DNA of 53,382 bases, filler included, from Bipalium vagum (taxonomy: Eukaryota): assembly GCA_037834085.1 (NCBI GenBank). It is 3 parts of 3 records of this genome, joined end to end, with 100 filler letters (N's around TTAATTAATTAA, not from the genome) between each part and the next. Parts side by side here need not be neighbours in the genome. Positions count along the whole stretch, not along the records: positions 21,011 to 37,115 come from JBBMKC010126937.1; 2 more parts are not named here. One strand, given 5' to 3'. The notes under the pieces are model-generated. The model did not search any database, had not been told where the DNA came from, and saw only the letters and a program-made list of their open reading frames with translations. Made by a program: the position numbers and the translations under genes. This document shows, in pieces, positions 21,011 to 37,115 of this stretch. Position 1 is the first letter of the stretch. Each line of letters starts with the position of its first letter.

Positions 21011-22164
21011 ACAAATTTTCCTTTATTAATTCATACTGCAAAAATTAAGTTTCATAAACCGCCATTAATTTCTTTACAACCTAATAAATCGAATAGGATT
21101 TATATTGATACATTAACATTTTCGTTAGATTCTTTTGGTGCTTTTCTTCTAGAATTATTTAATTTTTCCAAATGAACGGGTATTGTATATTTCTTTTGGA
21201 TCTTTAATTTTTTGGAGTTTGAATATATTTCACTTTATGATTCTGGTTTACGTTGAATAAATTTGTTGTTCTCACACGTCGGTTTATTTCACTCGTGGGC
21301 TTACAGTAGAGCGTCACCATACTAAAGATTTGGGAGTCAGAATAAACCTAGTTAATTAATATTAAAATATACATATTTTCCTTCGACATTGTCAATTCTT
21401 AACAATTGACATCAGAATTGTTACATCTTTCATTTGACCTTAACCTAGATTTTTATCTTAACAGAAATCTCAAATAATCATTTAAGAGAGGAATGGGACA
21501 TCGAAAGAGAATTATTCGGTATAGACGAGAAGTTGGCGGTGTTATGATGAAGATGGCTTCTTAGTAATAAATCTCAAGTACTTTTAGACTATGAATGTTC
21601 CACGTATTTATGAAAACATTCTCCGAAGTTTGTTCAAAATCCATTTTTCTCTTCACCGATTAAATCCATAAATATTTGTAATGATTTTATTAAAAGTGTA
21701 GACCTAAGAGAAAACAATCATAAGAAAATACTTTCACCTGGTCCCAAGGATATTTTTATAACATTTGCATATTTCCCTTGAATGAAAGACCCGTTTCGTA
21801 CATCTCTTAGGCTACTAATGGTTGAAACTTTACCGAGGGAAAAAGGAAATTAATTAGAACAAGCAGATAAAATGAGATTTTTATTATTAATTTTCAAAAG
21901 GAATATCATATCTAAATCTTACAATGAAACACAATTTCGTAATTAATCGAAAAATAATCGATAGTGCACACGAAACCATATTCACATGGTCAAGGGAGAT
22001 TCAGACGTTCAAGGTTTCCAACAGCTGATAGTCCGTCATTTCGTCATCTTGAATTCAGAAGAGATCAGACCGTGTTCGATCATACAGCAACGAATTGAAA
22101 TGGCGGCTATACACGTTTAATTGTGTCATCTCAAAGGATAACGAGTGGCAGAACGCAATGAAAG

Positions 22165-22361
22165 CTACACAAGTTCAGAATTGGAAGTAAGCAGTTCCTG
22201 AAACTGAGAAATATATTTTTTGATTTTCAAGCAAGTCAATCTGGAATCTGGCGAGGGGCCCCAACACTGAGGTATTATAAAACAAAGCAGATCAATGATA
22301 CTCGCAGGGGAAACATTACAATCTGGATTCATTATTACTGATGATAATTGATCTGAGGTGC
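22165..22361 (-). CDS. Type I receptor exon 4 (kinase subdomain XI and stop)
   Basis: Acceptor ttctag|GC in phase 1; encodes [26 protein letters not shown] (compare ECW..NPAARLTALRIKKTL); TAG at 22165-22167. Confidence 0.88.
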
Positions 22362-25300
22362 CTAGAATATCAAATAAAATAATATTGATAAAAATAACAA
22401 TAATCATAAGAGTGACAATAGTTAATAGGCTGCATCAAAAGTTCCCGTTAATTCAAAATTCACACCAACCATAGTGCAATTATATATGAAAAATGGCATG
22501 GAATCAATTGATTATTTTTAAAAATAATAACCCTTATTATGTACAACTTGTTACCATAATGCGCCGTTTTTATTTTTTTTGTGTCATTCTTTAGACATTG
22601 AGGTAAAGAACTTCCTGCAAAATTTCTCTACTTCTTCAAGATTAACAAACTGATGTCCTCTCCAAAGTTGTTCTACCGAAATAAAAAGTGCATAACCTAA
22701 GGGTGCCAGGTCTGGACTATAAGGAGGATTAGGCAAGAATTCAATCCCATCGATTGTAGTTAATTTATCTTGCGTCAAAATAGACAGTGAGGTGGCACAT
22801 TGTCATGCTGATAAAGCAGTCACTTTATTGATTAAACATGAATATTTTCTTGTAAAACTGTCAAACTGTTCACAGTAAACCATTGAAAGCACGACCACGT
22901 GGAACAAACTCAAAATGAATTACACCTTCATAATTCCACCAAACACTGATGATATCCGTTTTCCAAAATCGATTTCTTTGGACAATTGTTGCAGGAGGTT
23001 GGTCATGTAATATTTAATATTCACCTTTCCCGTGATAAATATAAGACTGACAAAATTATATTTCAGAAATTGACCATTTGGTAAAGAGCCCGTGTCTCTG
23101 AAATTTAACATTGCAAAAAATTGATTGTAGGAAGATATACGAGACCACTCAAACCCTGTTCTATCATTATCTTGTTACATATTTAATTTGTTCGAAGTGA
23201 CTTCGGTTTTGTTAATAAAAATCAAGATAATAGTTGCATTAAGATTTCGTACACATCGATCTCTTGTTCTTATTTGAGAACGATGTCATGTAGATAAGGA
23301 TATATTCAGGTGAATAGATTTCGTTTTCGTTGAAAGTTTCAGGGATTGAATCTCTTAGTAAGAGTTCGATGAGGCGAGATCGGGCTGATATGGTAAATGT
23401 GATATCACATTTGATCCAACAACCAATATTTCGATCGAGCCACCAAACTTAAATTGGGTCTGGTGTGATCATGCTAAATACTTTTTTTAATCTTTCACCC
23501 AGTGGCAGTGTCTTCAACTTCACACAGTTATTTAACTTTCCCAAAGGGCATCAGTTTCTTTTAATTGACTTCAGCTTGTGTTTTGCTTTGAGGTAGTTCA
23601 TCTTTCCTGATACATAACCGCATTGATTTAGTGTTACCAAACCATTCCTGATCATCCAATATGATTTTTTCAAAAATGGCTCATTTTTCTCACATTTTAG
23701 ACACAAATCACAGATTCCAAATCGATAAACTATCCATTTTCTTTGTGAATTTCAAGATTTTTTAAATAAACAAAGTGCTTCAAATGAATTTGTGGACAGC
23801 TGAATAAGACAAATCCACTGATTTTCAAATTTGTTCCAAATGCCGTTTTTCTTTTACTACATTCTTCAGTTTATTATTATCAGCTTTAATTGATCTTCCA
23901 GAACATAGGTCAACTCGAAGGTCAACATTTCCCAAACGAAACCTAAAAAACAATGTTTGACACTGACATCCAGTTATCAAGCCTTTCCATGACACTTAAG
24001 CAGTATTTGTAGCTTATATATTAGGTGTAATAATAAATAATACAGATTTCAATCTGCGATTAATGTTTAAATCAATTATTAATATTGCATCACGTTTTCA
24101 AGAAGATCAATTAGAAATTTTTAAAAAAATCGGTCCAGCAGTGTCTGACTTGGCAAAAAATCAGGTGCTTATAATATATAATGAATGGCAACATGTCCTT
24201 CTCTTCTTAATAAACAGCGTCGAAAGTCGTTCTTATGGAAAGTCATAACGGGAGATGAGAGATTGATTCAATATGATAGCTCGAGACGTAAAAAGTCCTG
24301 GGTGTATCCTAGAGAACGGATTAACATCGGTCGGAAAGTCAAATCGTTTCCGAAAAAAAATAATGGTCTCCATTTAGTTTGATATTAAGGGTGTGATATA
24401 CTATAAGCTGTTGGGACATTTTCTGTCGATCGCTACAAAAACCAATTATTCCGATTGGGTCTACATTTTGAGTTAAAATGCCCATTTAGTGGGAAAGGAA
24501 ACCGACCTATGATATTTTTGCATGACAACGCTAGACCACATATAGCTTCAAAGACAAAGAACACCGCAATGCAGCTTGGCTGGGAAATCTTGGATCATCT
24601 AGCGTATTCACTAGACAGTTGCTCCAACTGTTTATTATTTGTGAGGTCAATGCAGCATGGCTTGTGTGATGCACACTTTCAATCAGTGGATGCCATACGA
24701 AAATGACTTAGGAATTTTAGGCTTCCAAACAACCAGAAGTTTTTCAACATGGAATTCATCAACTTCCTCGAAGATGGCTCATAGTTATCCATGACAAAGG
24801 GGATTATTTTGATTGGTAAATTTGTATCAGTTTTAATAAAATAAATTTTGAAGGTAGTCAAAAATTTGGATTATTTATGTGTACACCTAATAAAAAGTCG
24901 ATACTGCAATTTTTTATCTTGGATATCAAATTTGACCGAAAATATAATGACATAAATTTACCGATAAGTCAATATAGGAATATCGATTGTCGTAATAAAT
25001 ATTGAATTAATAATTTAAAACTAGTTTTATTGCTCTAAATTAAATCGATAACATTGGGATGTAAAAAAAATAAAACGAAATCGATTCCGAGAGGATTAAT
25101 AAATTATTTTTTATTAAAAATTTATTTGAATTAAAAATATTAATAAATGAATCTAAAAAAGTGGGTCCAGCGTGCAACAATTTTGTTTAATAATTGATTT
25201 GACACTCATTTCAGGACAAGCTAAGTTTCTGTAGGTCAAATATTTGACAAAAATTTCATTTGTGCATTGTATTAAAAAAAATATTATTTGAAGACAAACA

Positions 25301-28300
25301 AAATTTGAAAAATCTTTAAATAATTTTCAATTAATCAATATTTTTTTCAATAATTAACCAATCAAAAGTGAGCTTTCATTAGTTCAGCTTGTTTTACCAG
25401 ATTGATTTTGATATCGATTTTTTTTAGTTGTAATGATACCGTGAGATAAAACATCAACCTTTCTATTGAGAGGAAGCCAGAATCAAAATTCTACAATCAC
25501 TCTCAGCTCACATCGAATACCTAAGTGCTACATGACTGTGGTATTGATTGTAAATTATTGGATATGGTCTCTTACACTTTTCTTATTGTTGCAAATAAAA
25601 GCGAGGCAGTTTGTGAAGAGCACCCTTGATCAGCAAACGCTTACTTTGATAATTGATTGTTGGTCGCGTCGATTGATCTAACACGATTGAACGCATCTCT
25701 GACAGTTGAGGTTCATAGTAGTATTGTGATGAATCTGGCGTCTGTGACTGCCTTGATCTGATAAGCTCTGACTGATATGCTGGTTCGTACAGCCAAGTGA
25801 CGCACGATTCTGAGGAATTGGACATGGACGATGAGGAGCCGGAGGAGGAAGAAGTGGAGAAGGAAATGGTATTGTCATTGACAGACGGACACGGATTTGT
25901 GGGACGCTTCAATTTCGGCTCAAACCACACCAACAATTCCCACAAGATCAAACTCAGTGAATAAATGTCTGATTTCTTGTAGTCTTCCACTGTTTTTGAG
26001 TCTAGAGCAAAATTTGTGTTGCCTGGATCAATGTGCGCGAGTAGCTGAGAACAATGAACTTTCATCAACATTTCATTTACAATAACAATAAAACAATGAT
26101 AAAAATTAAAAAAAAAAGGAACAACACTGGGTAGAAGGGTGTCCCAATTCATAAAAATCGAACAATTAAAAGGTACAACAATGATCAATTTTTGAAATGT
26201 TTAATAACGTGATAAAAATGGATCCTTAACGACCAACACGAACGAGAACAACAAATGTGGAACCTCAATGACTCCAGCCAAATCAAACATTTAATCTAGC
26301 GATTTTATGGTGGTCAAGAGAAGGAATTATTCACTGTTCCTTCCTTTATTCTTGTGAAACTATCAAAGTAGAATGATGCTGCAAGGAGCTTCAAGTAATG
26401 AACCGAGGACTCTGATAAAAACAACCGTCATATGAACAAGCCTATTCCGGACAACATGAAACACAAATCATTGTGACAAAACTAAAGAATTTTGGGGTAC
26501 GAAGTTCTTATTTTCTGGACCTGGCACCTACCGATCTTAATCTTTTCACAAGCTTAGCCAACTTTAATGCAAAGTCAACGTAGCATCACCCAAGTCTGTC
26601 TCTTTGGCCTTTCAGAACTTTTTAGCCAATAAAAACAAAGGCTTCATAAAGGACATTTTTAATTTGCCCTTCTTTGCAGCGAGCAATCTTTTCCAAAGAG
26701 TGAACTAATTCATTGAAAAAATGTTTGTTGCTGTTCATGATGCAGTTCGACTTTCACATCTCCGGGTCGTCGTTCATTTCATTTGAAATCACATAATGCT
26801 TAGTGATCTTTTCGACACTTATAACCGCAATTGTAACAAGACTTCCAATCTTTCAAACTAAAATTTTGAACCCCTCCCTTAAAAGGTCCAAAACAACCAC
26901 TGTTTCCTTTTCCATAAAGAGCTCATGGATGTTTATTTAGTAAGAAGTAAATCGATAATACTAACAGAAACCCTCACTGCATGTGAGAAGAACAATTTTG
27001 ACGATTGAATTATTGCCAGTAATGGATACAAAATGGGCCAAAACGGACAACAGTGTCTCCCGAATAAATCTTAACTTGGAAATACAAATTTAATTGGAAC
27101 ATCAAGCAAAGGATCCTGGAAGTGCCAAAAACAATATAAGTGAAATCACGTACGATAAAAACATAATTCTCGCTCGAATCTCAAACATGATAATTATTTT
27201 TAATAATGTTAAATGGGACCTGTTTCTACTGATCATCAAGCAAAAAATGTTATCGATTTTTCCAATCAATTTTAAAATCATAAAGCAATGTTCAGAGTTC
27301 TTTTTGGATGTTACCTTTTATTATTTTATTTCATTAAAATTTTTTATTGATTCCGAAAAATAAATTAAAAATATCTTTTCACAAAAAATGTTTTTGAAAA
27401 ATTTAATGATTTTTTAATTGTAAACTCGATTTTTAACTCTTTTTGCTTTGTAAGGACTCCATTTGTAAAATAAAGACTTTCAAATATAAAATAATAAATA
27501 TAAAATTTACTTTTGAACCATCAGATAATCTCTTATAATTCTTATAATATATTATTATTATTATTATTATTATTTTATATTATAATTAATTTTAAATTAT
27601 TTTATTTAGAATTTTAAATTATTTTATTTAGAATTTTAAATTATTCAAATAATATTGTTCTCTATTGTTAACAATTAACTAAAGTACAGCAGGCAATTAG
27701 AACAAAGCGGCCAGAATTGATCAATGGGAAAGGCGTTGTATTTCACCATGACAACGCAAGACCACATGTGTCTTAATGACTCAAGAAAAAATTGAAGAAC
27801 CTTGATTAGGAAGTTTTGTTGTATCCTCCATATAGTCCTGATATTGCACTCATTTGTTTCGTTCACTGCAAAATGGTGCAAAAATTGACACAGAAAACCA
27901 CTTATCTCCGTTTTTAAGCGAAAAATCAGAGTTCTAAAATGACGGAATTATAGATTTAACAAGGAAATGACAAGATATTGTCGACCAAGATGGTGCATAT
28001 GTATTTTGATAAAGTTCTGACATTGTCTTAGTATTATCACGTTTTCATATTGATAAATCGACAACCCAATATATTGACAACAATCATTTGACCACATTTT
28101 GTTCAAAACCCGTTACTTTCCAAGAAATTAAACAAAGTTTTTTAATAAGCAAAGTTCGATCTCTGTATTCGATATAAATGTTTTCAGCTTCGAAAAACAA
28201 AAAGAACAAGGTTTTGGAAAAATTGAAAAGCATTTTGTTTGTTTTAATTAATAAAATGATATTAAAACAATTAACAACCGAACAACTTATTTTTCCGTTT

Positions 28301-31300
28301 TATTTTTTTGTATTAATATTATTCATTATTTTTCCAAAGTTCCGATTATTTTATTTTTTATTATTTTATTTCATATTAAAATATTGATTATTGAGATTCC
28401 AGATATATTTCAATAAACCGTCCTCCTTGTACCTTGCAAAAAAGTTTCGGTGAAGTAAAAATATTTCATTTTCAAAATATATTTTAAAATATAAAATGTA
28501 AAATGATGCGTAAAAATCACTCAAGAAATATTTTTTAAAAATTGACATTGTTATTGATTTATTAATTATTAAAAACTTAATTTTATTTAATAAAATAAAT
28601 AATCAGTAAATTAATTAATAAAAATAGATAATCTATTTCAGATAAAACAAATTTAAATATTCACTTTATTTATCACAAAAAATTTATTATTAATATTATT
28701 AATATCAATATTATTGTTAATAAAATTATTATTAATAATTAAAAATTCATTATAAAGCTTTATACGTGGTAGAGTTCAGACCTTTTAATTAAACGTATTC
28801 CCATAATCATTAATGTAATAATCAAATCCGTACGATAATGATTTCCGTTGAAGGCTCACTAATTTCAAAAGATATTAATAACATTTATAATTAATTATAA
28901 TTAATAATAATTAATGACAATTATTTTGCAAGACATAAAACTACAAATGGGAAATGTCACTTTGTCAAATGGTCTGAAACCTCAAATGATGATTGCAAAT
29001 GGCGAAATCAGTGACAAAAATTACTTCTGGCGCCACATAACGGCAGTCGGTGGGCAGTAGCACATTGGAGACATAGAAGTCGAAGTCGGAAACGTGCATC
29101 AGACCGTTGGGAATGGCGGCCTGAGTGTGGGCCTTGGAGTCGAGACCGGGCCTTTCACTTGATTTATCGTCATTGACAAGAGCCCATTCCAGGTCGCCAA
29201 TGCAGCAGCTGTAGTCATCCTTAACGTAAACATTGGTCGACTTGAGATTTCGGTGAGCAATGGCCGGCTTGCCTTTGGTGGCAGCGATTTCTGGGAAAAA
29301 ATCACCATTATTGACACACAGTGGAACGAGCAGTTCACGGAAAAACCAAACACAAAAAACGGGGCTCTCCTTTTCGAAAAAGTGACAACTATGGAAAGGA
29401 AAAGATCGCGCCAAAAATATGTTCTAAAGGTGAAAATAGTGCCAATGTCACCAAGTCATTTTTCCTTCGAGAATGTGTAACATTTAAAGTGTTGCACAGG
29501 GGTTTAACCGATGAACACTTTAGAAGTTTATATGAAAACGACCCAAATCTGGAGAACGAAGATTTTCTTCCTACACCTTCATTAGGACAAATACAAGACT
29601 TAAGGTGGTTAAATGTTCGAAGCTACGCTGAGAGCTGAACAGGCAGTGTCAGCACGACATGGACAAAATATAAACTTTATTTATTTATTTTATTTGTTTT
29701 CGGCCCAAATATCATTCCAGTAGATTCATTCAAAGCCAGATTTCCTTGAGCCAACGAAGAAAAGTCTGACAATTATTTGAGCTCATAATTTCTCGGAAAT
29801 AATTATCAGTTTTTCCGTTCCACAGTTCGTATTTCTTCACAAATCAATTACACATACATTCCTTTAGAGAAATTCGAAAACCATTTCTGCGAATGCTTTT
29901 CAAAGGTCCACCATGGAGCCTTTGGGGAGGCCGGGCAAATCAAGCCTGTCAACGCTCTTTCCAGGGAAAAATAAAATAAAATAATCAATACAAAAAACAA
30001 TTTTCGAAAGAAAATAAACGTATCAAGATTTAATGTTTACGTTCAGAGAGGCTCAAATTTGAGGAAGTTGTCAATTAATTTTCCGACATTCTTTTATTTA
30101 TTAATAAAGATAAATAATTATTCATTTAAAAAGTTTGATTAATTCAAACAAATAAAAATTAAAATAATTTAATAATTATCTAAAATTGACCAATTATAAA
30201 AATTGATCATATTTAAATTAAAAATAATAATATTATAAATAATAATAATGTTATTAATAATAATATTGATATTAATAATAATGATAATGAAAATAATTAT
30301 AATAGTAATAATTTTAAATAGAGTGGATAAACTATTAAAAAAGACTATTAGTATTAATTAATAATAATGATGATAATAATAAAATAATGCTATTAATAAT
30401 ATTATTATTATTACTAATAATAATAAATTTAGATAATAAGGATAAATTAATAAAAAGATTAATAATAATAATAATTATTATTATTATTATAATTATAATA
30501 AATTAAAATAATATGATAAACTATTATAAAAGATTATTCCTTAAAAAGAGGTTTAAATAAAAAAAAGTTAAATAAAAAGAGAGAAAATAATTCTTTTGAA
30601 CATTGATTATAGCAAAAATATCCGTATACACTGAAAAAAAGGAAAAAATAAAAAAATTCCAAATTTTCTGCAGAATTATTTGAGAGAAAAATATGAAACG
30701 ATGTTTTTCAGAGATCTTCGGTGGAGATAAAAATTGCGAGGGTGGCTCGAAAATATTTTTCAAATGTAAAATGAAAAAAGAAGACAAATGTCACAGAGGA
30801 AAAAAGTATTAAACCTTTCCGAGCGAAAAATACGATTTTTGGAAAAATCAATAAAAAATATTATGTATCAAGATTTATTGGAAAAGATCATTATCAATCA
30901 GAAAAAGATTACCAAATGTAAATCAAATCGAACAGACCAAACGAAGGGGGGAACATTTCAACGTCAATTTTGGAAAGGAAGAGTGCAATGAAGTCATTGA
31001 TTATTTTGAAGAACAGTCTTTAATTTTTAATCAATATTTATCATTCAAATAATATTTCAACCGTTGCAACAGTGCTTCAATTTTTAATATTGTTTTATTA
31101 ATTAAATGCTAAGGAAAACTGTTTGTTTTAATTAGAGCATGGTTTCTTTCGTTCTCAATTCTTTTTTAGCAGAAATAACATTTATAATTGTTAATTATAA
31201 TTGTGAAGGGTCATTAAATTATAACGATTGATCAAAACTTTCAATATAAATTAAAAATAGTAATATTAATAATTAATAATAGTAATAGCTAATTATAACA

Positions 31301-34270
31301 ATTAATANNNNNNNNNNNNNNNNNNNNNNNNNNNNNNNNNNNNNNNNNNNNNNNNNNNNNNNNNNNNNNNNNNNNNNNNNNNNNNNNNNNNNNNNNNNNN
31401 NNNNNNNNNNNNNNNNNNNNNNNNNNNNNNNNNNNNNNNNNNNNNNNNNNNNNNTTAAAATAATGGACATAATTAGTGAAAATAATAATTTTACACATTG
31501 AAAACCAACGGGAGAATTTGATTCCAATGTTTTCCAAAAGTTAGAATTGATTTTTTGGTAAAGTGTTTGTCCAGGCCGTCAATCATTGTAAAAAGGCAAC
31601 TTAAAAGAGATTTCTTCAGTAAAACATTTCTTGAAGGACAGAAATTAATCGAAAAGCGTGGTTTCGTTGGCAAAAACAGATATCAATCATCTTTCACAAT
31701 ACGGAGAGACGTCCGAGGACAAGCAGTCCCCATTGTAAGGGGACAATAAAAGCTCAACAAAACGATCACTCCGAGTGGTAGCTGCAGCCCAATTTCCTCA
31801 GCTACGGACAGCGTTAACCGTCAGCGACCAGTGCCACAAATTGCAATTAATTACATTTTTTTGTTGAAAAAAAATAATATTTTTTCAATGTTCAAAATTT
31901 GAGTCATGATTAAATAATTTTTCAGAGAATTAATTATTAATTGATTTTTAATTAGCCAATTAAAAATATTCTCTGAGAAAGTTTTATTAAGTTATAAAAT
32001 ATATTTAAAGAGTTCAGAAGTAATAATAATAATAAAATAAAATAACTAAAATTAATAATTTCTATCATCATCACAATATTATTATTATTATTTATTATCA
32101 TTATTATTACTATTATTCTTAATAATATTTTATTATTTTAATAATAATATTTTTATGGTCTTCCTTAAATATTATCATTTCAATAATATAAACTATTTCC
32201 AATTGAACATATCGAAGATAGGCATCCAAAAAGTTAAAGTCTAACTAAATAATTAATGAAAGCGACTTTCAACAGTACTTGAAAAGCCAACCCTTAATTA
32301 TAATCGTCATAATATTATTTTAATAATATTTGAAAACATTAGAAACGTTTTTCGTCGTTTTTTGTCATTTTTTGCATTATTAATTACGGAAAATAATAAT
32401 TGTCAAAATTTTAATAAAAATAAATCGAATAAAATTAAAAATCAATAATATTATTTTTTAATTATTGATTAAATAAAAAAATGTTATAAAAAGTTAAAAA
32501 TAAGTTCTCATTTAATTAAAAATATTGTGATTATTTAACATTTTAATCTCATCAAATGGCATTGAATATTTTAGAAATAAAATCGATATTATTTATTAAA
32601 TAATTTAAAATAAAAATATATCAATAAAATTGATTTATTAATTTAGGAAATCATTATATGGTTTAAGTGGACTCTTAGACGTCGGACACAAGATTCTGTG
32701 AGCTTATTTCTGATGAAGGTTTCTGGTTGTTATGGGAAAATGTAGAAGATCTCCATTGAAATTGGAATGGCTTTAATTGTCAGCATAGTCAGAGAACGAA
32801 TCAAGGGTCAACATTGTCAGCTGACTTAGCTCAAGTGATGGACCCTTTATTCGTGATGTTTTTCAGTGACAATTTTGGCAGCTTACAGAAATGGTCCATA
32901 CACGGTTAACATAAGTAATAAAGAAAAAGAATAGGAATTGGTGCACCCCGGAAAAACAGTATCCAACCAATACCTGTGTGAAGATAGCAAAGACCGGCTA
33001 CCAGCGAAAAAGCCATTCGTGTCAGGGTTTCCAGTCGACAATTTCCGACAGTTTCAGTTCCCGGCTGTTTGGATTCGGGGTTGGCAGTCAGGTCCCAGTG
33101 AGAGGTGGCCATCAGTCGTGCCAAAGTTCCCCAATGGAAATAGGGGTAAATCAAAATCGGTCTCAGTCCACACCCGATAACCAATTCCTGATTGAACTGC
33201 TCCATGAGCAACTCAGAGAAATTGGACATGGATATTTTATCGGAGCCCAGCATTCCTACGACAGCGTTGTGACGCAACGGACTGAAAAAGTATAGTCGAA
33301 TCGTGCGCAACCACAACATATCATCGAGTATTTTGACATTGTTTGAAACGAGACACTTCACAGTCACCGTTTCGCCGAGCCACTCGCCGGCCCAGACCTT
33401 GGAAAAGCGACCTTTGCCCAGAAAGCTTCGAAACAGGATCTGGTGGCCAATGGTCCGTTGGATCAACTTCTGCTGCGACAAGCATGTTAACTGAATCGAT
33501 GTGCTGTTGGTCAACATTGACGAGGCTGTCATGACGGAACCGGAAGCGGTTTTGTGGTTATTCAACAATGCAGTTTCGCCACGATCTTCTGGTTTGTCGT
33601 TTTCAGCCCGGAAGCGAAGGTTGGCAATATTGTTGGGTGTCAGGTCTGCTTGTCGTAGAATCTGCTTCTTAATACTGATGTGCCGTAATATTTTTTTGCG
33701 ACAATAAAATGCCAGTACGCTTATAAGAAAAAGACACACGAATAACACAGTCAGGGTCACAGATAAGAACATTATGTTGATATTGACTTGATATTGATTG
33801 TAATTGCTATGGACCGTCTCTTTTGGTGGAGAATAGATCAATAATGCCTGATTCTTTGCGTCTTCATCACTTTTGTGATGATGAAAGGTCGGTGACAATT
33901 CTGAGTTGCAAAAACTGGTCTTATTGCAACAGTTAATAGCAACCGGAAACGTCAGATTGGCATAATGACCCTTGCAGTTCAAAAAGCTCTTCGATGTAGT
34001 TGACAGGCAACCGAATTTGTTGACAATTTTAGCACTCACTGGATTGGTAGTGACATCGATTTGAATGATTTTTGCTGAGTAACAGTGCCCTTTGTCGATT
34101 ATCACACAAGAAGAATTCGAAGTGGCAGGTTTTGTTGATCGGCATTTATCGTGATCGTTACATTTACAATGGAACAGTGGATTGCTCAGATCGAACAGCA
34201 AATAAATAATGGAAACAAAAAAATAGACAGTACAATAAAATTTATTGCAAAATATAGCTAAAATTTTCAT
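22165..34270 (-). CDS. TGF-beta-family type I receptor (BMPR1/Tkv/ALK3-6-like ectodomain) with predicted pseudokinase domain; 4 exons join(34270-32974, 29290-29025, 26044-25645, 22361-22165), 719 aa
   Basis: All three introns are GT-AG and phase-consistent (1,0,1). Exon lengths 1297+266+400+197 = 2160 nt. Signal peptide, 10-Cys ectodomain ending [11 protein letters not shown] helix, LIQRTI, and kinase subdomains I-XI in order ([33 protein letters not shown]...[10 protein letters not shown]). Confidence 0.93.
22425..23170 (-). mobile_element. Degenerate mariner in receptor intron 3
   Basis: [15 protein letters not shown] (ORF 22584-22778), ITGKVN/SVWWN-like segments and a TIR-like end at ~22425. 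Confidence 0.8.
23250..23990 (-). mobile_element. Degenerate mariner in receptor intron 3
   Basis: Minus-strand [12 protein letters not shown] and N-terminal fragments resembling VDLRVDL/LEDQLK. Confidence 0.6.
24021..24890 (+). mobile_element. Internally deleted mariner with both TIRs and TA target duplication
   Basis: Left TA-TTAGGTGTAATAATAAATAATACAGATT and right (reverse complement) TTAGGTGTACACATAAATAATCCAAATT-TA; internal [25 protein letters not shown] and [12 protein letters not shown]. Confidence 0.9.
25645..26044 (-). CDS. Type I receptor exon 3 (subdomains IX-X with Ser-rich insert)
   Basis: Acceptor tctcag|CTA, donor CAA A|gtaagc; encodes [17 protein letters not shown]...[15 protein letters not shown]. 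Confidence 0.9.
26200..26720 (+). mobile_element. Degenerate mariner fragment in receptor intron 2
   Basis: DKKWIL-like motif, WWSREGIIH and [17 protein letters not shown]. Confidence 0.7.
27665..28072 (+). mobile_element. Mariner 3' half in receptor intron 2
   Basis: [44 protein letters not shown] and a TIR-like CGACAACCCAA-TA end. Confidence 0.85.
29025..29290 (-). CDS. Type I receptor exon 2 (catalytic loop to APE)
   Basis: Acceptor tttttcccag|AA completes the E of LHTE; donor GAA|gtaatt; encodes [19 protein letters not shown]...CCIGDLEWA...RYVAPE. Confidence 0.92.
31308..31454. other. 147-nt N gap inside receptor intron 1
   Basis: Directly visible run of N with no linker. Confidence 0.97.
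32974..34270 (-). CDS. Type I receptor exon 1 (signal peptide, ectodomain, TM, juxtamembrane, kinase N-lobe)
   Basis: First ATG of the long ORF at 34270; donor CAC ACA G|gtattg after GLCYLHT. Confidence 0.92.
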
Positions 34271-35874
34271 TCTCGTCAATCGAAATTAATCACACCATGG
34301 TTTCCGTAAACTGAACCAATACCACAAAAGTTCTGGTCAAGATCTTTATTGAACTAATTTTTATTTAAATATATTTAAGATACAAAATACGAAAATTGTG
34401 CAGATTTTTATTAATAGTTTTAATTATTTAAACAAATGATGAAAAAGTAAAATCGTTGGTGAAATTAAACGAATTTTATTTCCATTTCAAATAAGCAAGG
34501 TTAAATAAAAGACTAATAAAATTAAGGATCAATATTTATTTTACATTCCTAGAGAATTATTTATTAAATCAAATTCCTTATAAATGTTCTTATGAAGTTA
34601 GAAACAACAATATTACATAATCATAAAATAATGACACAAATCTCAATGTGACTCTACAACTTCTTTTTCTTTTCCCAAATCTGCTGAAATTTAGCGAGAT
34701 TACATCGTTTTTTTTTTATGGTCATACTCCATTTATTACATGTTTCTTATTGAAAACGAAAAATTGTGCAGGGTCTTTTCTGTATTTCGAGTTTTTAATA
34801 TGAAGGTACGTTACTTCGATTCTATCATACAAAAAATTTAATGTTAATTTTCCCTATTTTCCAGGTTCTTTTCTATTTGATTATAATACCATGAAGAGGC
34901 ATGTCGTATGATGGAAAACAGTGACCTGAATCTCGTTCTTTGGATTTCTCGTAAAAATCTCTAACTAAATCTTAATGGAATTTTGATGAATATATCCGCC
35001 TTAGTCTTGTTCTGTTAGAACCTGTCGTGCAATATTGTAAAGATACATAAATATTTTATTCGGTAAATTAACTAAAAAAGTTTCGTGAAAAAATCAATGA
35101 TAGAATTTTTGAGCATCTGCACCTAATTTTACATATTTTATTAAAGATTTAATTATTTCGAAGACGAAACACATTCATTTTTTGAACCTGTTTGATTTTT
35201 CTTACAGAGAATTAAGAAATTATATTTTATTATTTAGAAAGAATCAATTTTGTTCTCAGCATTGTAATTTTATATATAAATCTCCTGACATGGAATCTTT
35301 TGATTGTATAATGACTTAGGCTACGTAATGGGAACTGAGCTACTGATAACGTACAACAGAGACTACTTGTAAGTCTCTAATTCTGTGTGTTACTCAAGTC
35401 TGATTGACGATATTAAATGCTTCTAATATAAATTGGCATTTTCCCGTTCGATAACGGTGTAGAATAAATTTTATGCTTAGGCTTTAACAGATGAGTTTCA
35501 AAGCACATCACCTTCCATTAAACCAATAAATTTATAAAACAAATAAACCGATCGTGATCATTAATTTATTATTATTTTGCAATATTATTGATTAATTTGT
35601 GACAATCAAACCGACAAAGAATTGTTGTACATTGTATTTCGTGGAGAAAATATAATGTAATAATAAAAAAAAGTTGCACTCCGTCTTTTAATATTGATTT
35701 TTAAATAATTACAGCACCACATAAGGTCTATAAGAATCAGTTTTATTGATTAAATTCCGTTTTATAATTCGATATTGATAGAAATTTTAAAGTAATAATT
35801 CAGAAAAAAATATCTTCATTTCTTAAAAAGAAATATTTTTTCTTCGTCATTGTGAGATAATTTAAAAATAAGTC

Positions 35875-35926
35875 GTGGATTGTAGCTCAGCGGTCAGAGC
35901 AATTCATGTGCATGTGAAAAGTCTGT
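35875..35926 (+). pseudogene. tRNA-like 5' fragment (Ala-TGC-like); tRNA pseudogene or SINE head
   Basis: TAGCTCAGCGGTCAGAGC forms a perfect D-arm/box A, followed by a TTCAT-GTGCAT-GTGAA anticodon-like arm; no T-arm or box B follows. Confidence 0.55.
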
Positions 35927-37115
35927 TTGAATATATTATTTAAATACGATGTCTGCTCTTGAGGATGTCTTAATTGATGAATGTTTGGACAAGTTAAATC
36001 AATTTCATTGCGAAAAATTTATTATTACTAAAATTAAATTATATAATCCACACTCAAAAATTTTTTAAAAAGCTGTTGCAATTGTTGAACACATTGATGT
36101 GTTGATTACACCACCAAAACACAGGGAACCGAATTTTTATCCGAGAGCCCTTGAAATTAAGTTACCAAAGGTTGTTCCATCTTATCTTAAGTAAACCATC
36201 TTCTCCGAGTTATAACTTAAATTTAAGTTGTAAATAAAAACATCATTGTTCTTCGTTTAAAATTTGTTTACAGTGTGTGATTTAATTTTTCGATTCAGTG
36301 TTTCATAATCGATTTCTTGTTAAATATGAAAATTTTTAATTTACAACGCTTTATTTAAGTTACGACACATTATACATATCATAAAATTATTTTTCTTCTT
36401 CAATTTGAATTCCAATAACTTCACATCTTTGATTGTTTTACTGTCTTTAATTTTGTTTTTTTACGAATTCATCAGACCCAGAGTGGAATTAGTATACCAT
36501 TAGTGAGGATATCAGAGTATTCTGTCAATGGAGATCAATCAAATAGTTTCTGATTGCGTTTCAACTGGAATTCAACCAATCTTCTAGACTAGCATGAAAA
36601 TATCAACAGGTTAGTTCATTAAGCATTGTTCTTGATGATTCCACTACATGGCATCACATTAAGTGGTTAAAAGACTTCTTTAGAATTTGACTCAGCACCC
36701 TGATCAGGCATCAGAAGGTATTTATCTGCCAATACACTGTGTCTTCCAAGTGATTACATAATCCAATTGACAGAGGGGATTCCTGGAAGAATACATGGAA
36801 CTGATTGTTCCCGCGGCTTCACTCAGATTGCTTCAAGCAGCCTCCATTTTCTTACAATAAAATACAATCACTGATCTTCAATCCATTGTATGATGGAATT
36901 CATGGAAGTGTTCAATATTTAGGGTATCAAATTTAATTTGACTCCAAAATCTTAGGTGGTGCAAATCAAAACAATCAGTAAAGCAACACGTGTATTTATA
37001 CCACACTAAAATACAATACAATACACTAAAATTCAAAAAGATAATGCACAGGCTTGGGATCACAATAAACTGTCTGAAATGTTCCACAAATCTTACACTA
37101 TCTGATCACAACACA

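Follow-up and report, generated by a model that had tools for sequence, protein, structure and literature searches.

A probably non-catalytic, type-I-derived receptor of the TGF-beta family in the flatworm Bipalium vagum

The 'TGF-beta receptor-like protein' EmTRL of Echinococcus multilocularis (EmuJ_000906600, UniProt A0A068YGF3) was judged by its authors to be probably kinase-inactive and a possible pseudokinase or BAMBI-like modulator, and its expression in larvae was low (PMC10073696). Kaethner et al. 2023 grouped EmTRL with the schistosome Smp_124450 and the planarian SMESG000074605 as an outgroup in their tree, and the group was called type II for its lack of a GS box (PMC10073696). The schistosome member was listed elsewhere as 'ActRI/BMPRIa' (PMC3820750), passed a Schistosoma mansoni kinome survey in which activity was judged by Lys/Asp/Asp only (PMC3117856) and was reported with its Fasciola counterpart among kinome outliers and possible drug targets (PMC12688102). 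In zebrafish, kinase-dead Bmpr1 rescues BMP2/7 signalling while the Acvr1 kinase is essential (PMC8054026). The gene described here lies in a window of 53,382 nucleotides of Bipalium vagum DNA (assembly GCA_037834085.1), in which positions 21011-37115 (JBBMKC010126937.1) were the piece examined; positions are numbered along the whole stretch and the gene is on the minus strand, as are all of its features given below. Overall, the gene was read as an intact, selection-maintained, type-I-derived receptor of the flatworm Smp_124450/EmTRL clade which is probably non-catalytic and would have a scaffold, allosteric or decoy role, and this reading was given a probability of roughly 0.65.

Gene structure and catalytic positions

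Splice junctions were read from the sequence and re-checked by script, and the searches, fold models and trees were run exon by exon. The piece contained a single gene of four exons. Exon 1 (34270-32974) starts with an ATG at 34270, ends in phase 1 and encodes an N-terminal hydrophobic segment, the ectodomain, the transmembrane segment, the juxtamembrane region and the amino-terminal lobe (N-lobe) of the kinase through alphaE. Exon 2 (29290-29025) encodes the catalytic loop, D-L-E and a long activation segment up to RYVAPE, exon 3 (26044-25645) the alphaF-alphaH region, a Ser-rich insert, AYQSE and the stretch ending in RPTINYQ, and exon 4 (22361-22165) the C-terminal helix and the stop codon TAG (22167-22165). 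All three introns are GT..AG, the split codons are GAA (Glu) and AGC (Ser), and no internal stop was found. The coding sum of 2160 nucleotides gives 719 codons and the stop, which bears out the uninterrupted 719-codon spliced frame claimed by an earlier interpretation of this DNA, the sequence-only reading. The chance of 717 open codons at the local composition was P ~10^-16.7, stop-free shuffles of exon 1 numbered 0 of 20000, the longest open stretch in any intron was 107 codons, and the GC content was 0.38-0.53 in the exons against 0.26-0.32 in the introns of this AT-rich piece (approximately 26-32% outside the exons). The frame is therefore not a chance open reading frame.

The codons at the catalytic positions were read by script. 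In the catalytic loop H-R-N-L-K-S-T-N (29232-29255), the codon at 29247-29249 is AAT (Asn), so that HRN replaces HRD, and the catalytic-loop Asn is kept. D-L-E stands for D-L-G at 29187-29195, with the Mg-binding Asp kept and GAA (Glu) at 29187-29189. The position of the alphaC Glu, the salt-bridge partner of the Lys, is ACG (Thr) at 33302-33304, and the third Gly of the glycine-rich loop (G-loop) GKGRFS (33401-33418) is Ser. The beta3 Lys is retained as AAG at 33356-33358, and the Ala two residues earlier is Thr. A phmmer search of all PDB chains placed these residues opposite the canonical D, E, G and K and the third G-loop G of ACVR1/TGFBR1, so that both codons and alignment confirmed the HRN, WLRT, DLE and GKGRFS motifs and the kept beta3 Lys described previously. 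Overall, the complete type I catalytic set is broken by four changes (Glu to Thr, Asp to Asn, Gly to Glu and third Gly to Ser), while the beta3 Lys, catalytic-loop Asn, DFG Asp and APE are kept. With Asn for the HRD Asp, the gene falls within the sequence definition of a pseudokinase, which is the absence of at least one of the VAIK Lys, HRD Asp and DFG Asp. An HRD Asp to Asn change together with loss of the alphaC Glu is the pattern of HER3. The sequence-only reading had also proposed binding of adenosine triphosphate (ATP), which is less safe than it assumed given that the V-A-x-K Ala, the catalytic-spine residue over the adenine ring, is replaced throughout the clade, and that the G-loop and alphaC are changed too.

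The region between alphaC and the catalytic loop also differed in length, with 124 residues in the Bipalium gene, 140-153 in trematode relatives and 87-107 in canonical receptors. The L45 loop is not of canonical length and an extra helix was modelled by AlphaFold2 between beta4 and beta5. This insert occupies the L45 region where Smad docking is expected.

Both the HRN and the DLE codons are one G to A change from canonical and an assembly gap lies within the same gene, as would be expected if these two substitutions were sequencing or assembly errors in an ordinary member of the clade. Such errors are extremely improbable, as both sites are surrounded by clean, GC-rich exon sequence and are 2 kb away from the gap, HRN and D-x-E occur independently in the assemblies of other species, and the changes common to the whole clade would stand without this assembly. 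An assembly artefact was likewise rejected as the explanation of the gene. The gap (Ns at 31308-31454) sits within intron 1 (29291-32973, phase 1). The end of exon 1 (CYLHT) and the start of exon 2 (E) form a contiguous stretch in canonical receptors, and a phase-1 intron between LH(S/T) and E is also present in S. mansoni and Trichobilharzia szidati with no intervening exon. The gap therefore hides no exon, and affects only the length of intron 1 and not the frame or the protein.

The N-terminal hydrophobic stretch (34184-34240, amino acids 11-29) had a Kyte-Doolittle mean of 1.73 over 19 amino acids and is a plausible signal peptide. It is followed by a Cys-rich ectodomain (33905-34168) with ten Cys at amino acids 35, 37, 43, 55, 63, 88, 99, 114, 115 and 121 and a CC-x5-CN box at its end. 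Alignment with 27 relatives placed every one of these Cys, and the Asn of the box, in columns that are invariant or at least 90% conserved. A single transmembrane segment (33704-33772, amino acids 167-189, Kyte-Doolittle 2.74 at 168-186) separates the ectodomain from the kinase, as in type I receptors. Between this segment and the kinase lies a degenerate GS region (33440-33556), a T/S-rich stretch with the kept helix motif L-I-Q-R-T-I-G-H-Q and without the SGSGSG-LP loop. Canonical controls carried SGSG(S/A)G-(L/V/M)P 2-4 residues ahead of (L/I)VQRTI; the SGSGSG loop was missing from the Bipalium gene and from every member of its clade, in which only the Q-R-T-I helix motif was kept.

Type I affinity, relatives and age of the catalytic losses

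The best matches of all four exons were the type I kinases ACVR1/TGFBR1/BMPR1B/ACVRL1. With phmmer, exon 1 matched type I receptors (ACVR1/TGFBR1) at an expectation value (E) of 4e-12 against 0.2 for type II, and exon 2 at 3e-8 against 5e-4. The S. mansoni member of the clade (P0159) scored 160-173 bits with type I and 71-92 bits with type II receptors. Type-I-specific motifs were kept, namely Q-R-T-I-x-x-Q-I before beta1 and G-T-x-G-K-P-A-x-A-H-R. The AlphaFold2 model of the kinase part of exon 1 had a predicted local distance difference test score (pLDDT) of 72, with 85-93 over beta1-beta3, and a topology of beta1-3, alphaC, beta4, insert helix, beta5, alphaD and alphaE; the top 50 fold matches were all ALK1/ALK5/ALK2 (probability 1.00, root-mean-square deviation 1.7-3.8 A). 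Pfam searches of raw open reading frames and exact exons gave nothing above threshold, the best being PK_Tyr_Ser-Thr at E 0.035 on exon 1; this silence is explained by a divergent domain which is split over exons and not by absence of a kinase fold.

A type I origin describes the clade best, its members having lost the GS loop and carrying an insert at the L45 loop. A derivation from type II receptors, by which a comparison with type I pseudokinases would be misplaced, agrees with the absence of the SGSGSG loop and with the published tree, in which EmTRL, Smp_124450 and SMESG000074605 stand as an outgroup treated as type II (PMC10073696). It is nevertheless very improbable given the roughly twofold bit score of the S. 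mansoni member for type I, the E values of the Bipalium exons, the kept type-I-specific motifs and the fold matches; a type II origin was rejected on bit scores and motifs, and the published 'type II' label of the Smp_124450/EmTRL group appears to be wrong. The 'BMP-type-I-like' description in the sequence-only reading held for the type I affinity of matches and fold and not for a canonical BMP type I receptor, as the SGSGSG loop is absent and the L45 insert present. A canonical BMPR1 orthologue was rejected for the missing GS loop and the separate clade, and a BAMBI-like receptor for the presence of the kinase domain.

An exhaustive HMMER protein search with exon 1 returned relatives of two kinds. 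The first was a close protein fragment, P0001 (UniParc UPI00060C4A01, 220 amino acids, 65% identity). The second were proteins of 880-1100 amino acids with 34-40% identity, all digenean (Clonorchis, Opisthorchis, Paragonimus, Fasciola, Calicophoron, Dicrocoelium, Schistosoma, Trichobilharzia and Heterobilharzia) and annotated as receptor Ser/Thr kinases, 'TGF-beta receptor type-1', 'BMPR1A' or 'putative activin receptor'. A word-indexed protein search with exon 1 produced zero matches, the relatives being outside its length band. The trematode proteins formed one clade with a Shimodaira-Hasegawa-like approximate likelihood ratio test (SH-aLRT) support of 100, on a long stem apart from canonical type I receptors. 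In the tree of the exon-1 region, exon 1 and P0001 were sister to 11 trematode members (SH-aLRT 99). Because two long branches meet in this tree, clade membership also relied on introns and derived residues. The phase-1 intron between LH(S/T) and E and the phase-0 intron directly after APE (intron 2, 26045-29024) were identical in the Bipalium gene, S. mansoni and T. szidati B, which makes both positions common to schistosomatid orthologues. The third intron (22362-25644) is in phase 1 within a Ser codon, after the A of AGC, and S. mansoni has a third intron of the same phase within a Ser codon, a probably shared position. On these sequence characters, the Bipalium gene belongs to the flatworm Smp_124450/EmTRL receptor clade. 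The S. mansoni 'putative activin receptor' P0159 was taken from its annotation to be Smp_124450.

Several features of the digenean members were also observed. Trichobilharzia and Heterobilharzia carry two paralogues, A (P0158/P0163) with HRD and B (P0165/P0035/P0166) with HRN. Only the A paralogue was retrieved from five Schistosoma species, in which B may have been lost or missed by the search. The models of S. mansoni (P0159, 952 amino acids) and Clonorchis (966 amino acids) are without an activation-segment insert of ~85 amino acids ending in L-L-(D/E)-W-W-P-(V/I)-G-G that is present in models of sister species (P0159/L002 against P0164/L003 of S. haematobium, and P0003 against P0154), probably because its exons were skipped in older annotations. 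All digenean members have a strictly conserved S-S-S-G-A-S-S-L, which could be a phospho-acceptor cluster, in an otherwise variable C-lobe insert ahead of the last helix. Exon 3 of the Bipalium gene has a Ser-rich run SSSSGSSSS at ~25838-25864, at a different position.

The age of the substitutions was determined from motif and column counts in 19 clade rows and 21 canonical rows, with 143 other relatives from the search as background. The third G-loop Gly was Ser in 19/19 clade rows and Gly in 21/21 canonical rows. The alphaC Glu was replaced in all 19 clade rows, by Thr in 18 and by Val in one (Heterobilharzia A), and was present in 21/21 canonical rows. Similarly, the V-A-x-K Ala was Thr, Leu, Val or Ile in 19/19 clade rows and Ala in 21/21 canonical rows. 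Among the background relatives, conservation was complete for the alphaC Glu (130/130) and nearly so for the third Gly (128/130), the HRD Asp (41/42) and the D-x-G Gly (29/31). Structural positions were invariant in the clade (alphaC Trp/Arg, L-R-H, the Asp after beta4, G-x-L and the L-H before the catalytic loop). HRN was found in Fasciola, Calicophoron, Trichobilharzia B, Heterobilharzia B and the Bipalium gene, a distribution which needs at least two to three changes within trematodes and one in the Bipalium lineage, and so at least three origins. D-x-E arose twice, once in the lineage of the Bipalium gene and once in Heterobilharzia B. In most of the trematode proteins HRD and D-I-G are unchanged and Pfam recognises a Pkinase domain.

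Since they occur in 19/19 clade rows, the third Gly to Ser change and the loss of the alphaC Glu are, on this alignment, old and clade-wide, and only HRN and DLE are lineage-level. The 'four independent' catalytic changes of the sequence-only reading are accordingly not four hits on one gene, as two are clade-wide and the other two recur elsewhere. It had proposed to check orthologues for conservation of the substitutions and for constraint: Thr was present in 18/19 rows and selection in Schistosoma was purifying (see below), but HRN and DLE are not clade-wide and most trematodes keep HRD and D-I-G. Overall, the Bipalium gene is an intermediate step in a series of degeneration and not an isolated oddity. 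Heterobilharzia americana B (P0166) combined HRN and D-I-E with a beta3 Lys to Arg change and a ruined G-loop (GIKRDS), convergent with the Bipalium gene, and the same genome also keeps the less degenerate A paralogue P0163. Outside the clade, three type-I-like proteins had degenerate catalytic motifs: P0131 (508 amino acids) with A-H-N-N-L-S-S-K-N and D-F-S, P0040 (461 amino acids) with S-H-G-D-F-H-S-K-N, and P0013 (499 amino acids) with D-F-S. Natural loss of catalytic residues in the type I receptor family may thus be more widespread.

A working atypical kinase, with Asn for the catalytic base, slow phosphotransfer and HER3-like residual activity, would signal catalytically, and it agrees with the kept K, N, D and APE, the confidently kinase-like fold of the N-lobe and the HRD, D-I-G and Pfam Pkinase match of most trematode members. 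This explanation is rather unlikely, as five ATP-site or catalytic positions are altered together (third Gly, A-x-K Ala, alphaC Glu, HRD Asp and DFG Gly) and the GS activation loop is gone. In addition, members of the clade repeatedly lost the catalytic Asp, and Heterobilharzia B and EmTRL have Arg for the Lys, the pattern expected once catalysis is not selected.

Selective constraint, proposed function and intron sequences

Codon-by-codon comparison of S. mansoni and S. haematobium (764 codons, synonymous divergence dS 0.29) gave a ratio of nonsynonymous to synonymous substitution rates (dN/dS) of 0.17 overall, lowest in the ectodomain (0.12), intermediate in the kinase lobes (0.18-0.20) and highest in the juxtamembrane region (0.23), which showed that the clade is under purifying selection. 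The ratio between T. szidati B and S. mansoni was 0.23 at a saturated dS of 1.9 and was not relied on. Between the Bipalium gene and the protein fragment P0001, the kinase part was 74% identical and the juxtamembrane region 51% (Fisher p = 0.0014), and the clade-specific insert was also well conserved. Together with the intact frame and splice sites, the conservation with P0001 argues for a functional Bipalium gene in which the pseudokinase domain itself is constrained.

These results bear on a further explanation, namely that the gene is a paralogue, inactivated recently or not expressed, which is turning into a pseudogene, and that the catalytic changes are decay. The gene is known here from genomic sequence, EmTRL is weakly expressed in Echinococcus larvae (PMC10073696), the branch is long and no single exon reached the threshold of a Pfam family, all of which would suit decay. 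Against it, the 719 codons are open in a genome where open stretches are rarely longer than ~100 codons, the GT-AG introns are intact, the structural positions of the kinase do not vary, P0001 is closer to the Bipalium gene in the kinase part than in the linker, and the clade persists across Digenea and beyond with a dN/dS of 0.17. Decay is thus quite improbable.

For a non-catalytic receptor, the following course is proposed. The ancestor of the clade would already have had the GS loop, the alphaC Glu, the third G-loop Gly and the V-A-x-K Ala replaced, and the Bipalium lineage would then have also lost the catalytic Asp (HRD to HRN) and the DFG Gly (DLG to DLE). The protein is most likely unable to phosphorylate receptor-regulated Smads (R-Smads) in the canonical way. 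Its conserved ectodomain would capture a ligand of the TGF-beta/BMP/activin type, and the pseudokinase fold would pair with active type I/II receptors as a scaffold, an allosteric partner or a damping decoy. The zebrafish Bmpr1/Acvr1 precedent, which the sequence-only reading had cited correctly (PMC8054026), shows that a non-catalytic role exists within this receptor family.

A broader reading extends this role to the whole Smp_124450/EmTRL clade, including the schistosome and liver-fluke genes, as an ancient family of non-catalytic, type-I-derived receptors and obligate partners in ligand binding or scaffolding. In this case phosphotransfer would have been given up with the loss of the alphaC Glu, the catalytic-spine Ala and the GS loop, the family would have persisted over hundreds of millions of years, mirroring in nature the zebrafish Bmpr1 role for which kinase activity is dispensable, and HRN, D-x-E and Lys to Arg would be later, neutral and recurring losses. 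This extension is tentative, and is more doubtful than probable.

Several points weigh against a constrained, non-catalytic Bipalium receptor. Loss of catalysis is inferred from residues, with the Lys, Asn and Asp all kept, and HER3 retains weak activity despite a similar residue pattern. Of the signal peptide, ten-Cys ectodomain and transmembrane segment proposed before, the hydrophobic stretch at amino acids 11-29, the ten conserved Cys and the transmembrane segment stood; however, Pfam Activin_recp was undetected in the ectodomain, and the AlphaFold2 model of the ectodomain was poor (pLDDT 59) and had no Foldseek matches at E <= 0.001. A word-indexed protein search with exon 2 gave zero matches and no orthologue that covers the HRN/DLE exon was found, so that conservation of HRN and DLE within the lineage of the Bipalium gene is putative. 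The sister placement joins two long branches and so depends partly on shared motifs, and both the gene model and the substitutions were read from the assembly sequence. Finally, the ligand and partners are putative for every member of the clade.

Repeats and transposon remnants were found in the introns. Intron 3 carries an internally deleted mariner element at 24019-24892, in which the decayed remnant of a Mos1-type transposase lies between inverted repeats of 31 nucleotides (24019-24049 and 24862-24892, 84% complementary); an open reading frame at 24455-24706 on the plus strand matched the Mos1 transposase with phmmer (E 9e-11). A second, separate mariner/SETMAR-type transposase remnant with a PPYSPDLAP motif was located near exon 4, at 22584-22778 on the minus strand (phmmer E 2e-7 to SETMAR and 4e-5 to Mos1). 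The short mariner open reading frames were not recognised by Pfam, though phmmer against Mos1 matched. Intron 1 contains a long degenerate (TAA)n / ATAATAATT microsatellite of ~360 bp at 30152-30513, and further AT-rich tandem arrays are at 27525-27645 and 32075-32156. No RNA family of Rfam was found in the piece 21011-37115. On the minus strand 3' of the stop, poly(A)-signal-like hexamers are present at 22121 (ATTAAA, 44 nucleotides) and 21885 (AATAAA, 280 nucleotides), and both may be chance matches in such AT-rich sequence.

Comparison with described receptors

If the proposed reading is correct, parasitic and other flatworms would hold a conserved TGF-beta-family receptor that signals, or modulates signalling, without kinase activity. 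The members from Schistosoma (nearly intact), Bipalium (intermediate) and Echinococcus (EmTRL, almost fully degenerate) would then form a natural series and a ready-made test of which functions of type I receptors need catalysis, the question opened by zebrafish Bmpr1. The schistosome and Fasciola members came to be listed as active kinases and possible drug targets on the Lys/Asp/Asp criterion alone; as the whole clade has lost the alphaC Glu and is altered at the ATP site, ATP-competitive inhibitors may be the wrong approach.

Among known systems outside the clade, HER3/ErbB3 is complete in length, has an ectodomain that still binds ligand, binds ATP and acts through heteromeric partners. 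Its kinase fold resembles that of the Bipalium gene in Asn for the catalytic Asp and the absence of the alphaC Glu, but HER3 belongs to an unrelated receptor tyrosine kinase family and keeps the DFG Gly and the G-loop. BAMBI is a non-catalytic receptor of the TGF-beta family with a type-I-like ectodomain that modulates receptor complexes. It has a short intracellular tail and no kinase domain, whereas the Bipalium gene encodes a full kinase-like domain in exons 1-4; since this domain is complete and conserved, the intracellular part of the receptor is presumably functional. Canonical type I receptors share the 10-Cys pattern, the Cys box, Q-R-T-I and G-T-x-G-K-P-A-I-A-H-R with the Bipalium gene, which in contrast lacks the SGSGSG loop, the alphaC Glu, the HRD Asp, the DFG Gly and the third G-loop Gly and has the added L45 insert.

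The Smp_124450-type digenean receptors match the Bipalium gene in architecture and intron positions, in the third Gly to Ser change, in having lost the alphaC Glu, the A-x-K Ala and the GS loop, and in carrying inserts in the region from alphaC to the catalytic loop; some have HRN and one D-I-E. They differ in identity (34-40%), length (880-1100 amino acids), much longer inserts and, in most members, HRD and D-I-G. EmTRL, which bears the signatures of the clade in its published alignment, resembles the Bipalium gene in the C-x-C-N-D-x-x-x-C start of the ectodomain, the Cys box, the transmembrane segment and the N-lobe signature M-L-W-x-R...L-R-H...A-A-D, and both have neither a GS loop nor the alphaC Glu. 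However, only one of six invariant kinase residues is left in EmTRL, with Arg at beta3, Leu at the alphaC position and no G-loop, and SMART finds no kinase domain in it, whereas in the Bipalium gene the Lys, Asn, Asp and APE are still present and the kinase fold can be recognised. The authors of EmTRL also classed it as type-II-derived, while the evidence here points to type I. No follow-up on EmTRL was found in the literature, and the searchable literature held no statement of the clade-wide loss of the alphaC Glu and catalytic-spine Ala, the recurrence of HRN or the derivation from type I. The sequence-only reading knew of no described full-length pseudokinase type I receptor, which was not quite right, as EmTRL, of the same clade, was described in 2023 as probably kinase-inactive (PMC10073696). 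The Bipalium gene is thus an additional member of a known, barely studied receptor group and not the first of its kind, and the loss pattern across the clade is more interesting than the gene itself.

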